Part shown: one piece after another, positions 122-17,699 of the stretch
Numbering within the stretch: the first letter of the stretch is position 1
How the letters are laid out: each line of letters opens with the position of its first letter
NCBI GenBank assembly: GCA_965112735.1
Contig: OZ218952.1
Location: 5,332,001 to 5,396,000, forward strand
Source: Phaeosaccion multiseriatum
Lineage: Eukaryota > Protista > Ochrophyta, other classes
Direction: 5' to 3'
Length of the DNA stretch: 64,000 bases
Program-made: the position numbers and the translations under genes
Notes under the pieces: generated by a model
Database searches by the model: none
What the model was told of the DNA's origin: nothing
Seen by the model: the letters and a program-made list of their open reading frames with translations, nothing else

Positions 122-3100
122 GATAAGACGTTTGAGGTGAGGAACCAAGTGCTTGCATCATCTTTCTTGTGGTCGGCCTGGCTGCTGCCATTTTGTTTAC
201 CCACTGCTCTTTGTAATTATTTGCTCATCTCTGTCATCGTATGCCGCTGCTCGCTTTCACCCCGTCGACCCACGTCGCCTCTGGTCACCCGTCATGAAGG
301 TTTGCATGGTGGAGTGCACGGATCCTGATAGCTGCATAGTGAGTAAGGAGGTCTCTTGGTGCAGGCAGGTGTTGCCCGTTCCCCTGTCCCCTGCGCGCCC
401 CCTCCACCCAATCGTGGAACCCCCTCATCGATGTCATCGATGTCATGATCTTGGCTGGCCTGACACTCCTCCTCCTGGCAATGCCTAGCAATGCCTACAT
501 ACAGGCTGCTGCTGCTCCCCTCGTTCGCGCCTGCATGTGCCGGACCTCCTGCAAGCAGGCCTTGCACCCTCTAGACTCGCCCCTTTGCCTCTCTGCTTCC
601 TGGTCTCTTCTCTCGTCAACGCCCATCCTGCTCCCCTCAAACCATAGGGCGCCACCTTCAAGGACGCTTCGACCGTTACCTGCTCTGATGAGTTCTCATG
701 TCTGGTGAGTTGTCACTCAACCCAACTTGGCTCTCGATGCCTGGCGCCTGGCCGATTCTGTTCGTGCATTCATCCTCCGCCCTCTGCTTGCCAAGCAACG
801 GACCTTGCATTTCCTGACCTCTCCCCTCTTTGCCCCTCTGCTGCTTCCTGCCCTTTTGTTCTCTCGTCCACACACACCCATCCTGCTCCCCTCGAACCAC
901 AGGGGGCCACGTTCAAATGCCAATCGACCGCAACCTGCTCTGGGGAACTCTCATGTATGGTGAGTGATCAGCCAACCCATATCCGCTCTCCTGGCCTGGC
1001 CGGTTCTTTACCTTACTCGTGCCTTCGGCTGCACGCATGACGGCCCACACCTTAGCAACCCTTCCCCCTCTCCTGACTGTCCTATCTCTTCTCTCGTCCA
1101 CACACCCACCCTGCTCCCCTCGAACCACAGGGGGCCACGTTCGAATGCGAATCGACCGCAGCATGCTCTGGGGTAGAGTCCTGTCGTGTGAGTGATCAGT
1201 CAACCCATAGCTATCCGCTTTCCTTGCCTGGCAGGTTCTTGCCCTTGCCTTCCTCGTGACTTTCCGGTGCACGCATGACGGCGCGCACCTCAAGCCTTCC
1301 CCCTCCTCTCCTGACCTCTCCTCTGTGCCCTTCTGCTGCCTCCTGCCCTCTTCTCTCGTCCACACCCGCCCTACTCCCCTCAAACCATAGGGGACCACGT
1401 TCCAAGGCTCATCGACCGCAGCCTGCTCTGAATTAGATTCATGTCGTGTGAGTGACCAGCCAACCTATATCCGCTCTCCTTGCCTGGACTTTGGTTCCTT
1501 GAGCCTTGTCTTATTCATGACTTTCCGCTGCAAACATGACGGCGGACACCTCAAGCCTCAACCCCCTCCTGACCTCCCCTCTGTGCCCCTCTGCTGCTTC
1601 CTGCCTTCTTCTCTCGTCCACACCCACCCTGCTCCCGCCCCTCAAACCATAGGACGCCACGTTCGGAGGCCAATCGACCGCAGACTGCTCTGGGGTCCGC
1701 TCCTGTCTCGTGAGTGATCAGCCAACCCATATCCGCTCTCCTTGCCTGGCCGGTTCCTTGAGCCTGGCCTTGCTCATGACTTTCCACTGCACGCATGACG
1801 GCGCACACCTCAAGCCTCCCCCCTCTCCTGACCTCCCCTCTGTGCCCGTCTGCTGGTTCCTGCCCTCTTCTCTCGTCCACACCCACCCTGCTCCCGCCCC
1901 TCAAACCATAGTCGGCCACGTTCGAAGGCCAATCGACCGCAGCCTGCTCTGGGATAGGCTCCTGTGATGTGAGTGATCAGCCAACCCATATCCGCTCTCC
2001 TTGCCGGGCTGGTTCCTTGAGCCCAGCCTTCCTCGTGACTCTCCGCTGCACGCATGACGGCGCACACCTCAAGCTTTCCCCCTCTTCTGACCTCCCCTCT
2101 TGCCCTTCTGCTGTTCCCTGTCCTCTTCTCTCGTCCACACCCACCCTGCTCCCCTCAAACCATAGGAGGCCACGTTCGATGGCCAATCGACCGCAGCCTG
2201 CTCTGCGTTAATCTCCTGTGATGTGAGTACCCTGCCTGTCACACACCAGCCAAATCCGCGGTGCACGGCTGAATGTGTGGCTTAGCTACTTCTCGTACCG
2301 CACCGCTGCACGGCCCATACCTCGAGCTTGGCTCCTCGGCTTACCTCCCCTCTGTGCCTCTGGCCTCCTCTGCTTGTCCTCCTGCTCTCTCTATCCCAAA
2401 CACAGACTAGCCTTTTCATCGATTCGTCCATCGCTACGTGCGCCACCACGGAGTACTCCTGCCGTAATCTCCAGGTGTGTGTGTGTCTGACGAGTGGCCA
2501 GTAAAGGCACTGGGACTGGGCCAGCCCATGCAAGGGGACGGTAGAGGAGACAGTCCGTTTGCGAGAGATGTGATACATGCGGTGAGATGACGAATGACCA
2601 CCCGCACTTCTCTCGCTCGCACGCTCTCTCACTGTGGCCAACAGACAGCAGCTATATCACCAGGCACTGCATGCTGCATAGGCGAGTTTTGGTAAGTAGT
2701 AGTCGCAGGCAAACCGCCGCACTTTGTCCCCGGCCCATACGAGAGTTGTCCAAGAGGTCGAGGAGCGCTGTGTATGGCATGCCTCTTTTCGGGCAAACCC
2801 TTGCCCCCTGCGCTCACATATTTCCCCCATGCCCATCTCTTTGTGCGTGTTGCTGTACCGTAAACTCCCCTTTCCCGTGAACCCCGCCCGTGCGACTTTA
2901 CAACGCAAATACGATAGCTCTGACTTCGCCAATCTGTGTCCAGGTGAGAACGAGTGGAATAGTGAGGCAGACCTCGTCGCTCCCCCACTGGGCTGCTTTG
3001 GCATCTGCTGCTTCTCAAGGAGCGCGGATTGTTTACTCGTCATCCACTGCCCACCAACCTGACGAAAGCTTTTCTTGTCCCCTTTGTCATCGCTCCCCAC

Positions 3101-3504
3101 CCCCCTCTTGCCGCGGCGTCTCGCTCGTGCGGCGGTGCGGCCCTCCTGATGCAGACGAGGACGGGGACGGCGTTGCGGACCGTGTCGACAAGTGAGTGAC
3201 TTAGAGAATGGACCGACTGGGTGTGTAGGCCTAGGTGAAGTGAACGTTGCTTGTTCATGTGGGTGAGCTTTGCGTGGTCCGGGTGTGACCCCCCCAATGC
3301 ATCTCTCCAATACTGCGTGACCTGCGTGCCCCACCCCGCTCGCCTCTTTGCAGAGATTCCACACTGACTACATCCCTCCCTCCCTCCCTCCCTCCCTCCC
3401 TCCCCCCCTTGCTTTTGCTTGCGCCTCGCAGCTGCCCGGACACACCCAACGCCCTCCAGGAGGACTCCGACGAAGACGGAATAGGAGATGTCTGTGACAC
3501 GTAA
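122..3504 (+). CDS. 5'-partial 14-exon gene encoding a Cys-rich 19-aa tandem-repeat protein with C-terminal thrombospondin type-3 (Ca-binding) repeats
   Basis: Manually spliced AG/GT-bounded exons 122-136, 300-338, 648-704, 903-959, 1131-1187, 1391-1447, 1653-1709, 1912-1968, 2166-2222, 2406-2474, 2645-2691, 2918-2943, 3155-3191 and 3432-3504 sum to 705 nt with compatible phases and no internal stop. Translation: DKTFE-VCMVECTDPDSCI-[GATFKDASTVTCSDEFSCL-type x7][83 protein letters not shown]. The C-terminus fits the TSP3 consensus DxDxDGxxDxxDNCP...DxDxDGIGDxCD. The start is presumably upstream of the window. Confidence 0.88.
580..2230 (+). repeat. Tandem array of 7 intron+exon cassettes (period about 228-262 bp)
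   Basis: The blocks 'gtgagtgatcagccaacccatatccgctctcc' (donor side) and 'ctctcgtccacacc..ccctgctcccctcaaaccatag' (acceptor side) recur, with donors at 705, 960, 1188, 1448, 1710, 1969 and 2223. Confidence 0.95.
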
Positions 3505-6221: not shown

Positions 6222-7190
6222 GATGTCGTTTTCAGTTTTACTCCGTCTGGCTGGCTCTGCTCTGAAGCGCAGTGCCAAGTTGAACGGCCCCTGCAGGGAA
6301 GGAAGGAGTGCAAGCAACAAGGAAGGGAGCGAGGAACAATATCACCAGTAGCAGCATCAGCGACAGCACAGCGCGTTTGGGGAAAGGTCAGAGGACTTGG
6401 AAAGACCAACAAACACAACACCACGCACGCCTTCCACCTCAACAAGTGCCGCTCCCCCAAAGCTCATTCTCTCCGCCTCTGCCTGCCTCTTTCAACTAGA
6501 AACTTAAAGCTCAACTTCTCTCTCCCTCTCCCACCCCGCTCACCGTAGATACAGAGCGGTCTCTCCGTTACTTCCACTGGCTCCGCCTGCACCCCCCCCC
6601 CTCACGGAGGCGTTCAGCTATCGTCTCCGTCTCCTCGACCTTGTGTTCAATCCAAGGTTTACCGTTTAGTGTCCGCCTCGTCGAGCAGCTGTCCCCCCTG
6701 CTCCATCTGAAGAAGCCTTCTCCTTCTCGCCCCTTGAGTTTGAACAAGGTCTGCCCTCTTGCACTTGAGGTCTACCGTCTGAGATATTTGACACTCCCAA
6801 AGACGCTTGCAGGTGTAGATTCGTCCGCTCCCAACAGTGGTATGATTCGCAGCCAAAGAGGTCCTTGGCAAGGCCCCCATCGCACGCTCTATTGGCAGAG
6901 CCACGCAGTTGTGAGCAACGTGTTGCGGACCTTTGGCGATCGGCCACTTGAGATAATCGTACCCGTTGATTTCTATGCGTTGAATGGCTTTGAGACGATG
7001 GAAGCGGCGCTGGCACTCTCCACCGTCTCTTCATTGCAATATAAATATTCATATTAAATCCGGATCCGCGACTGACTGCAGCACGGTTGTGCCAAAAAAA
7101 AAAAATGTAACGGCTAGATCCATCTGAAACTCGAACTCCCCTCATTCCATCAATCATCAATGTCTCACAGAGAGGATTCCAGAGAGGAAG

Positions 7191-15291: not shown

Positions 15292-17699
15292 ATGAGGCGT
15301 GGGTTCGGGTTCGGGGTGAGGCTGGTACTGGGGTTGCTTCTTGTGTTTCGTGCCTTCCAGAGTCTGGTGATCGACCAGAGGACCAACGGCGGAGGTCGCA
15401 CGGGCAGCACCACCAGCAGTGTGCGTCTTTCCCCCCAGCACCGATGGGGGCCTTCAACAGAGAAGGACGCCGTGGCATACTCAGCAGAGGCAGAAGGGGC
15501 TGACGCTGAGAGGAGGATGGCTCGGCAAACAGAAGGGATTGCCGCAGCAGGAAAAAAGAGGGTGGCAGAAGCGGCGACGACGCGGCGTGAGGCTGACTTG
15601 ATGCTGGAGGCTAAAGACTACGAAGGTCTGCTCAAGTCGCCGTATATCGAGGGGCTTTGTGCTAAGAACAAGTGGGAGCTGAAGGCGTCGGCGGAAGAGG
15701 CGAGGAAGACTGGGATTATCGAGGCCATCCTCTTCGACAAGGAGTACGATTTGCTGGAGATGCGTCTCAGGGAGGGACAGGGCATCGTCACAGCGGTGGT
15801 TGTGGTGGAGTCCAACATCACAACGAACGGAAATGACCGTCCAATGAGCCGTTTGTTGCACGCTGCACACCTCACCACCCGCTTCACTCGCTACGACACC
15901 AACATCGAGCATGTGAAGGTAAGTCCTACGATACTTCTTCGGCCTTGGAATCCTCTTCGGACTTGTGGAGACGTGTACCCGTGTCACATTATTCTCTTGC
16001 AGAAGAAGTACTTGCGCATGTGGTCCGGCCTCCTCACTTCACTACTCGAAAGACTTTTCTCTCCCGCTGCTCTTGTGCTGACTGCTGCTGATGCATCCAT
16101 GCCTCCCCCCCCCCCTCTCTCCTCAGGTACTTTGGGGGGCCGAGGAGGAAGCCGCCGCTCATCTCGGTACGGCGAGAGACGAGCTCCTACACAAGGGATT
16201 TCGGAGCCCTCCCCTTATACGAGAGACGTACCTGCGCGATCGATGGGTGCCTGCGGCGGTCAAGGCGGGCCTCCAGCCAACGGATGTGCTCATTGTTGGA
16301 GACGTGGATGAGATGCTCGACAGAGACACACTCTACGCGTTTAAATTCTGTAGCAACCCCGCCATGCAGCAGTGCGACCCCAAACTCAACGACTTGGGAG
16401 GCCCAAAAGTGCTCTGCAGGGGCCGCTTTTGGGAGTCGCACTTCGACTGCCCTGTGCAGCAGAAACACCACCACCCCGATGCCATCTCGGCGCGCTGTGT
16501 GTTTGAGTTGCCTGACATGTGGACCGGGTCGCGCATCCGTCACTTGGCAGGGGGAAGGATGACAGCAGAGGTGTCCGGGTGGCACCTGCGGAATTTCTTG
16601 ACGGTTTCAGAAGTGGCGTGGAAGTACAAGACGTACGGGCACCCGCACCACAAATCGTTACCGAGCCTCGAGGCGAGCATTCAGAAGGAGCGAGAGGCGC
16701 TGTGTCCAAAGAGGGGGGGGCAGCAGCATGGCAGCCGGCGGAGCGGGGAGGAGGAGGGGGAGACTGAGGAGACTGAGGGGGGGGATGGCAGTGGATGGGT
16801 CTTCCCCGAGTTTGAGCGTCTGCCCCGCCTCGTACAGGAGGACCCGCGGCGCTTCTCCAACTTCTTTTGGAGGGATTACAGTTTCAGTCAAGCAGAGGCG
16901 GATGAAGAGGAGGAGGAAGAGGAAGAGGAAGAGGAGGAGGAGGTGGAGGGGGAGGAGGAAGAGGAAGGGGAAGGGGAAGGGGAGGAGGAGGAGGAGGAGG
17001 AGGAGGAGGAGGAGGAGGAGGAGGAGGAGGAGGAGGAGGAGGAGGAGGAGGAGGAGGAGGAGGAGGAGGAGGAGGAGGAGGAGGAGGAAGAGGAAGGAGG
17101 AGGAGGAGGAGGAGGAGGAGGAGGAGGAGGAGGAGGAGGAGGAGGAGGAGGAGGAGGAGGAGGAGGAGGAGGAGGAGGAGGAGGAGGAGGAGGAGGAGGA
17201 GGAGGAGGAGGAGGAGGAGGAGGAGGAGCAGGAGGAGGAGGAGGAGGAGGAGGAGGAGGAGGAGGAGGAGGAGGAGGAGGAGGAGGAGGAGGAGGAGGAG
17301 GAGGAGGAGGAGGAGGAGGAGGAGGAGGAGGAGGAGGAGGAGGAGGAGGAGGAGGAGGAGGAGGAGGAGGAGGAGGAGGAGAAAAAGGAGGAGGAGGAGA
17401 AGGAGGAGGCGGAGAAGGAGAAGGAGGAGGAGGAGGAGGAGGAGCAGGAGGAGGAGAAAAAGGAGGAGGAGGAGGAGGAGGAGGAGGAGGAGGAGGAGGA
17501 GGAGGAGAAAAAGGAGGAGGAGCAGGAGGAGGATGAGGAGGAGGAGGATGAGGAGGAGGAGCAGGAGGAGGAGGAGCAGGAGGAGGAGGATGAGGAGGAG
17601 CAGCAGCAGCAGCAGCAGGAGGAGGAGGAGGAGGAAAAGGAGGAGAACGAAGAGGATGGGCACACGGCAGACACGGGACCGGTCTTGATGAGTCAATAG
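15292..17699 (+). CDS. GT17 family glycosyltransferase (MGAT3/GnT-III-like), type II membrane protein with an acidic low-complexity tail
   Basis: N-terminal TM segment and GT17 motifs 'ILFDKEYDLLEMRLRE..VVVVESNIT', 'RETYLRD', 'LIVGDVDE' and 'GWHLRNF'. Exon 1 is 15292-15918 and exon 2 starts at 16127. The 3' end is ambiguous: stop at 17536 as assembled, or at 17699 if a 1-nt slip near 17095 is corrected. Confidence 0.82.
16905..17640 (+). repeat. About 730-bp (GAG)n trinucleotide expansion inside a CDS
   Basis: Directly visible, near-pure GAG/GGA run. Confidence 0.95.

Follow-up and report, generated by a model that had tools for sequence, protein, structure and literature searches.

Why should the short exons of a tandem array change faster than the introns that separate them? 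The question is raised by positions 648-2222 of a 64-kb stretch of an algal genome (contig 3, 5332001-5396000, plus strand), called the window below and used for all coordinates given without a contig; its GC content is 58.7%, and the genome comprises 67 Mb in 22 contigs. The initial annotation of this array of seven repeat exons had described hypervariable codons on an invariant scaffold, and had ascribed them to positive selection on exposed residues of a disulfide-stapled solenoid, as expected for a ligand-, pathogen-, or self-recognition surface. The observation itself is confirmed in the window. Comparison of the repeat sequences gives good support to selection for change at a small number of codons, and the repeats, which would belong to the gene of a secreted algal lectin, are probably under diversifying selection between the coils that they would form.

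Repeat Exons and Their Scaffold

All seven exons of the array are 57 nt long, in phase 0, and open in frame 1, and each lies between an AG acceptor and a GTGAGT donor. One exon encodes one repeat unit of 19 residues, xATFxxxSTxxCSxxxSCx, and Tandem Repeats Finder reports a period of 259 nt at 1086-2228 with 85% match. The components of the array are as follows.

648..704, plus strand: repeat exon 1, 57 nt, 19 aa, the most diverged and oldest copy
903..959, plus strand: repeat exon 2, with an additional Cys at position 6
1131..1187, plus strand: repeat exon 3, with an additional Cys at position 6 that adjoins the one of exon 2
1391..1447, plus strand: repeat exon 4, 57 nt
1653..1709, plus strand: repeat exon 5, 57 nt
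1912..1968, plus strand: repeat exon 6, 57 nt
2166..2222, plus strand: repeat exon 7, which forms the youngest pair with exon 6
705..2165, plus strand: six inter-repeat introns (between repeat exons 1-7), 171-205 nt each, of the form GTGAGT...CT-rich...CA[TC]AG

The residues T3, F4, S8, T9, C12, S13, S17, and C18, which had been called invariant, are indeed fixed in all seven window exons, and the scaffold codons TTC, TCG, ACC, TGC, TCT, and TGT are identical in 7/7 copies, as had also been claimed. The codon for T3 is ACG in six exons and ACC in one, and that for S17 is TCC in four and TCA in three. Positions 14-16 read, exactly as annotated, DEF, GEL, GVE, ELD, GVR, GIG, and ALI.

The 3' ends of introns I3-I6 (1346-1390, 1608-1652, 1867-1911, and 2121-2165) are near-invariant. 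The conserved intron ends may be due to splicing constraint (micro-exon definition) or to homogenization.

Divergence of Exons and Introns within the Window

Differences per site were counted among exon copies 4-7 and among introns I3-I6, with the following results.

Whole introns: 0.108 differences per site
First 45 nt of the introns: 0.062 differences per site
Middle part of the introns: 0.154 differences per site
Last 45 nt of the introns: 0.024 differences per site
Whole exons: 0.222 differences per site
Variable codons (the set of the initial annotation): 0.465 differences per site
Scaffold codons: 0.045 differences per site

The variable codons thus change three times faster than the fastest part of the introns (0.465 vs 0.154), and their divergence also exceeds that of the introns as a whole (0.465 vs 0.108 in copies 4-7). 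The earlier impression that the introns are more alike than the variable codons holds as well: identity is 86-92% in introns I3-I6 and 38-71% at the variable codons, with 68-88% in exons 3-7 and 91-100% at the scaffold codons. As a whole, the window exons have only about double the divergence of the introns; the excess sits in approximately 6-8 codons and is offset by the frozen scaffold codons. In NG86 estimates for copies 3-7, the nonsynonymous divergence (dN) at the variable codons is 0.37-0.62, and the synonymous divergence (dS) at the scaffold is 0-0.12, bar one pair at 0.22. Finally, the hot codons taken from the family-wide test described below were applied to the three independent window pairs 2-3, 4-5, and 6-7, so that no site was chosen post hoc; codon positions 1 and 2 of these codons are changed in 15/36 cases, as compared with 173/941 intron sites (Fisher p = 0.0013).

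Site-wise dN/dS (omega) across the exon copies was assessed with the maximum-likelihood (ML) codon models M0, M1a, and M2a (F1x4, free branch lengths), implemented in our own script and not in PAML, for the seven exons of 19 codons. By the likelihood-ratio test (LRT), M2a is better than M1a on four tree shapes.

Intron-flank tree: M1a vs M2a LRT 29.2, p = 4.5e-7, omega2 12
Star tree: LRT 26.0, p = 2.3e-6, omega2 10.8
Caterpillar-by-position tree: LRT 14.1, p = 8.8e-4, omega2 6.6
Exon ML tree: LRT 12.7, p = 1.7e-3, omega2 4.8

With the flank tree, M0 gives an omega of 1.07, the omega2 class of M2a comprises 33% of the sites, and the posterior exceeds 0.95 at codons 1, 5, 7, 15, 16, and 19.

Family-Wide Comparison

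The exon-plus-intron unit recurs on contigs 2, 3, 5, 7, 9, 11, 13, 14, and 16. The family sample analyzed here consists of 83 exons (62 unique) from 12 loci, for which an open frame and the C12/C18/position-4 pattern were required; it covers the family incompletely. The 57-nt length and the splice sites are common to all 83 exons, whose consensus is [DGE]-A-x-F-x-[DGN]-x-S-T-A-x-C-x-G-x-x-S-C-x. Residues lying outside the selection filter are still kept, namely A2 in 78/83 exons, S8 in 75/83, A10 in 78/83, and S17 in 80/83.

When all pairs are considered, the exons are more divergent than the flanks at every age: for instance, exon divergence is 0.177 at a flank divergence of 0.045, and 0.257 at 0.080. 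In 38 non-overlapping nearest pairs, differences are found at 671/8768 flank sites (0.077) vs 390/2166 exon sites (0.180; Fisher p = 6e-42), and the four-fold sites of the exons, with 27/269 differences (0.100), are close to the flanks (p = 0.16). Positions 1 and 2 of codons 1, 3, 13, 15, 16, and 19 differ in these pairs at frequencies of 0.29-0.53 (Fisher p from 9e-5 to 2e-14), which is 2.9-5.2 times the four-fold rate of the same exons; the respective value for codons 2, 4, 8, 10, 12, 17, and 18 is at most 0.05. The four-fold comparison is free of the intron history, because it is internal to the exons. The divergence of the hot codons climbs with age toward saturation, from 0.06 to 0.59. 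Thus the initial inference stands in part. That some of the codons are under positive selection is borne out both by the intron baseline and by the exons' own synonymous sites, but constraint on the introns or their homogenization accounts for a part of the contrast.

The cysteine codons of the family are position-specific, C12 being encoded by TGC in 61/62 and C18 by TGT in 62/62 unique exons, whereas other silent sites flip freely, as in F4 (TTC:TTT 32:29) and A10 (GCC:GCA 30:25). The fixed Cys codons may reflect either descent with constraint at the level of the residue, or a signal for splicing that lies 4-6 nt from the donor.

At L023/L024 (contig 3, 5087001-5106000), a higher-order repeat of very recent origin was observed. 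It consists of five exon-intron units with a period of about 1.2 kb, is present in many copies, and encodes identical protein repeats.

Gene Structure and Lectin-Like Domains

The exons that probably surround the array in the same gene are listed below.

300..338, plus strand: probable 39-nt phase-0 exon just 5' of the array, 13 codons with 3 Cys, AG/GTGAGT boundaries, in the array frame; 74% conserved in the same-contig paralogue
2406..2474, plus strand: degenerate terminal repeat exon, 69 nt, 23 aa, retaining F...C...SC; no Pfam match
2645..2691, plus strand: predicted linker exon, 47 nt, AG/GTAAGT, with the frame kept through to the stop
2918..2943, plus strand: predicted exon, 26 nt, AG/GTGAGA, from frame continuity
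3155..3191, plus strand: predicted exon, 37 nt, with a DxDxDGxxDxxD calcium-binding-type motif, from reading of the sequence and frame continuity
3432..3504, plus strand: predicted last exon with a thrombospondin type-3-like repeat and the stop codon TAA at 3502-3504, from a Pfam TSP_3 match and frame continuity

The frame of the array stays open through five further exons to the TAA codon, with AG and GT at all boundaries; the exons were joined in a script for this phase check, and database searches were run exon by exon. The 39-nt exon, the seven 57-nt exons, and the 69-nt exon are all of phase 0 to 0. The last exon alone matches Pfam TSP_3 (PF02412, a 36-residue repeat) at profile positions 1-14 with 19.7 bits (E = 6.8e-4; cut-off 25), the repeat being split by an intron, and DxDxDGxxDxxD motifs are seen at 3155-3191 and 3432-3501.

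The region 5' of the window (locus L016) contains a signal-peptide-like start, exons with the motif CxxCxxGxY, and two copies of a 128-residue domain. No Pfam model, including that of the F-type lectins, and no PDB sequence directly matches this domain. A profile built from its 19 genomic copies matches the striped-bass F-type lectin FBP32 (3cqo) with E = 1e-4. The AlphaFold model of the domain (pLDDT 87) aligns with fucose-binding modules and the carbohydrate-binding module family CBM32 at Z 8.6-9.8; for the pneumococcal SpX-3 (2j22), FBP32, and the eel agglutinin (1k12) Z is 9.5, 8.7, and 8.6, respectively, with a root-mean-square deviation of 1.9-2.3 over about 100 residues. A Foldseek search of the PDB with this model yielded nothing at E 0.001 or better. 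Judged by profile and modeled fold, the upstream domains, though not the repeat, belong with the F-type lectins at the superfamily level; they have no Pfam match, and scores are equally high for CBM32 and other galactose-binding-like domains.

The genome contains 25 matches to the lectin-like domain, most of them adjoining arrays of 19-residue repeat exons. Several paralogues of the domain have a motif resembling RxDCCxxR, with a His upstream of it. With regard to the fucose-binding His/Arg triad, the motif spacing in these paralogues differs from that of the eel lectin. At least 30 genes encoding FCP-like (fucoxanthin-chlorophyll-type) light-harvesting antenna proteins are also present; thus the host is a photosynthetic alga.

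From the exons and splicing predicted here, the product of the gene would be a secreted multi-domain lectin-like protein, and the listed part of the window would cover the 3' half of the gene. The order of the putative elements is a signal peptide, CxxCxxGxY modules, two F-type-lectin-like domains, seven repeats and one degenerate repeat, two thrombospondin type-3-like repeats, and the stop codon.

Relatives and Possible Fold of the Repeat

A profile of the 19 repeat positions, derived from the 62 unique exons, was compared with 1.84 billion representative proteins at the E-value threshold of 0.001. Three matches pass the threshold, and the sole credible one is the metagenomic protein P0002 (E = 1.3e-6). 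The other two seem unrelated on inspection: P0001 has a different long repeat, and the repeat of P0003 looks RCC1-like. No protein of this organism with these repeats was found among the 1.84 billion representatives. P0002 has 332 residues, a signal peptide, a membrane anchor, and 18-residue repeats xFxNSTVSCxGxxSC, and its contigs encode it without introns. It passes the cut-off of the Pfam family DUF7640 (PF24646) with 33.2 vs 28.1 bits. The C-x5-C spacing is common to P0002 and the window repeat, whereas the repeat of P0002 is one residue shorter and is not split by introns. A word search with P0002 recovered no relative other than P0002 itself, and no mention of DUF7640 was found in the literature. 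Searching all six frames of the genome with DUF7640 gave one match of 17.7 bits, located away from the arrays; lone 19-residue exons cannot reach 28.1 bits on this 121-position profile. Stop-free read-through frames containing two or three window repeats had no match in Pfam. By these searches, the repeat seems to be close to an orphan.

The AlphaFold model of P0002, made from the single sequence, is of medium confidence (pLDDT 69) and has three short strands per coil. Its Foldseek matches in the PDB are weak and all are beta-solenoids, the best having E = 0.02 and none reaching E 0.001. A shape search of the Atlas was uninformative but for one bactofilin-like cluster row. As in small beta-solenoids such as the cysteine-braced insect antifreeze proteins and the triangular beta-helices of the bactofilin type, a short repeat in the model would form one coil, with conserved small or hydrophobic residues alternating with variable ones; it differs from established beta-solenoids in that the structural match is not significant and the model is that of a distant relative. 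The C-x5-C spacing also recalls the beetle antifreeze repeat.

If P0002 is accepted as a proxy, A2, F4, A10, and C12 would occupy inward strand positions, and the hot codons would map to turns and outward positions; conserved and variable positions of the repeat do show an in/out alternation. The hottest codons (15, 16, 19, 1, and 3) would be concentrated between the second turn and the first strand, with the third strand included. On this proxy the variable positions would ring the perimeter, and the hottest of them would gather close to a corner rather than on a clean face. A Cys at position 6 is found in just 2/83 family exons, those of the adjacent window repeats 2 (903-959) and 3 (1131-1187), which suggests in-register stacking of the coils with an inter-coil disulfide. 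The fast residues may be exposed on a disulfide-stapled solenoid, as had been proposed in the initial annotation.

Selection and Alternative Explanations

We suggest the following scenario. The array would have grown by tandem duplication of exon-plus-intron units, after which eight scaffold codons (A2, F4, S8, T9, A10, C12, S17, and C18) were kept unchanged by strong purifying selection, and amino-acid changes accumulated in approximately 6-8 codons at 3-5 times the rate of silent sites and introns. The fast codons are 1, 5, 7, 15, 16, and 19 in the window array and 1, 3, 13, 15, 16, and 19 in the family. The repeats would stack as coils of a Cys-braced beta-solenoid rod, in which the fast codons would specify residues that face outward or lie in turns, and the surface thus varied would serve extracellular binding or recognition. 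The lectin domains make an extracellular binding role plausible; a role in ligand, pathogen, or self-recognition is a guess.

Several observations weigh against this scenario and point to concerted evolution, in which gene conversion or unequal crossing-over homogenizes the introns and the scaffold, and the variable codons drift under relaxed constraint. The introns are an impure neutral yardstick, since their ends are conserved and their last 45 nt are less divergent even than the scaffold codons (0.024 vs 0.045). At locus L020 (contig 7, 1531001-1541000), the exons at 7138, 7370, 7613, and 7845 alternate as A-B-A-B; 21/57 nt distinguish the A type from the B type, among them linked synonymous sites, and the flanks of the two types are only about 0.03 apart, which implies that the exon lineages are older than the surrounding introns and that their genealogies are decoupled. 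Later window units resemble units of contig 9 (80-81%) more than they resemble window units 1-2 (70-77%); therefore the array predates the gene duplication, and its history is mosaic. A part of the exon-versus-intron contrast is thus due to concerted evolution of the introns. The codon models also call for caution: the best-fitting tree, that of the exons, has the lowest LRT (12.7), such tests can be inflated by inter-repeat recombination and multi-nucleotide mutations, and here our own script was applied to paralogous repeats of one genome. We count their result as supportive, not final. Still, concerted evolution is insufficient alone, because neutral drift cannot lift replacement change above the silent rate, and this rate is exceeded at six codons in the exon-internal test; the preference for M2a on all four trees argues in the same direction. 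Moreover, codons 1 and 19, which are among the most variable, touch the splice sites; if selection did not maintain the differences, homogenizing tracts would need to end precisely at these sites. We consider concerted evolution alone to be an unlikely explanation.

Positive selection might also favor difference between coils as such, by avoiding misregister, aggregation, or recombinational instability, with no ligand involved. Divergence was indeed measured between repeats of one protein, and conservation restricted to the scaffold would suit a structural rod. However, avoidance of recombination should diversify the introns too, yet these stay alike; the divergence of the hot codons does not stop at some modest threshold but rises to saturation; and the lectin domains linked to the array suggest a protein that binds something outside the cell. 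This variant is quite improbable. A mutational mechanism is very unlikely, whether it acts by local hypermutation or by copying short cassettes from templates elsewhere in the family. Differences at two or three bases are seen in many codons, and well over 80 exons could serve as donors, but four-fold sites give no sign of a mutation hot spot, with 6/103 differences in non-scaffold codons vs 21/166 in scaffold codons, and no identical 9-nt match to codons 14-16 or 5-7 was found among the 76 other exons of the incomplete family sample. It is hardly credible that the repeats are a non-coding satellite or dead pseudo-exons in an accidental frame, even though the organism has no repeat protein among the representatives searched. 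The exact 57-nt length and the AG/GTGAGT sites in 7/7 copies, with no departure in the 83 pattern-picked family exons, are at odds with decay, as are the conservation of A2, S8, A10, and S17, which the filter did not fix, the eight codons with nonsynonymous change far below the silent rate, and the continuation of the frame through the downstream exons to the stop. Diversifying selection between the coils of a secreted lectin is therefore the reading that we prefer.

An extension of diversifying selection, which we regard as rather doubtful, is a cassette system. The symmetric 57-nt exons, whose intron ends are near-invariant, could be included or skipped combinatorially, yielding many variants of the rod from well over 80 fast-evolving coil exons attached to fucose-type lectin domains. 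Such a system would parallel, in an alga, diversification of the micro-exon or Dscam type, and its drivers would be viruses, bacteria, or mating partners.

Comparison with Known Systems

In conotoxin-type families, hypervariable residues lie between invariant cysteines with site-specific codons (PMC3823881), and the introns are conserved while the mature-peptide exon bears most of the substitutions and the positively selected sites (PMC3862624). The window family is similar in its site-specific Cys codons, conserved introns, and hypervariable residues. Conotoxins are small separate peptides of animal venoms that are compared between genes and species, whereas here tandem repeats of one large algal lectin are involved, one repeat per exon, and there is no sequence relationship.

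The layout of the gene also resembles that of the schistosome micro-exon genes (MEGs), in which tiny symmetrical exons make up most of the coding region, frame-preserving skipping is possible, and the secreted products evolve fast (PMC4350168). The window gene likewise has small symmetrical exons (39 nt, seven of 57 nt, and 69 nt) and a signal-peptide-like N-terminus. This is an analogy and not homology, as MEGs appear to be restricted to flatworms (PMC4350168). Further, the window exons are duplicates of one 19-residue unit, whereas MEG exons are not tandem copies, and alternative splicing of MEGs is documented.

Neighborhood and Other Genomic Observations

Among the 14 long open frames of the window, one Pfam match exceeds the curated cut-off, that to glycosyltransferase family 17 (GT17) at 15292-16308 (E = 8.4e-9); matches to a kinase and to an OSR1_C fragment are each below their own cut-offs. 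A (GTGA)n microsatellite of about 1 kb lies between the upstream gene and the lectin gene, at positions 921-1900 of locus L016, approximately 8.1-9.1 kb 5' of the window start. Large tandem arrays of FCP-like domains are found on contig 9 (474910-521083) and contig 15 (1683723-1700707), with each match in one uninterrupted frame and identical scores. The array of contig 9 consists of two inverted blocks.

Implications

It is rare for exons to evolve faster than their own introns, and where they do, selection for change is strongly indicated; most known cases come from animal venoms, parasite secretions, and immune receptors. Here the pattern concerns one protein of a free-living photosynthetic alga, in which a near-orphan cysteine repeat, probably one coil per exon, would be fused to sugar-binding domains, and it recurs at no fewer than 12 loci of the genome. 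If the proposed selection is true, the family would provide a handle on the surface recognition of partners, bacteria, or viruses by algae, and its repeat would represent a natural scaffold on which the surface can be changed one coil at a time.

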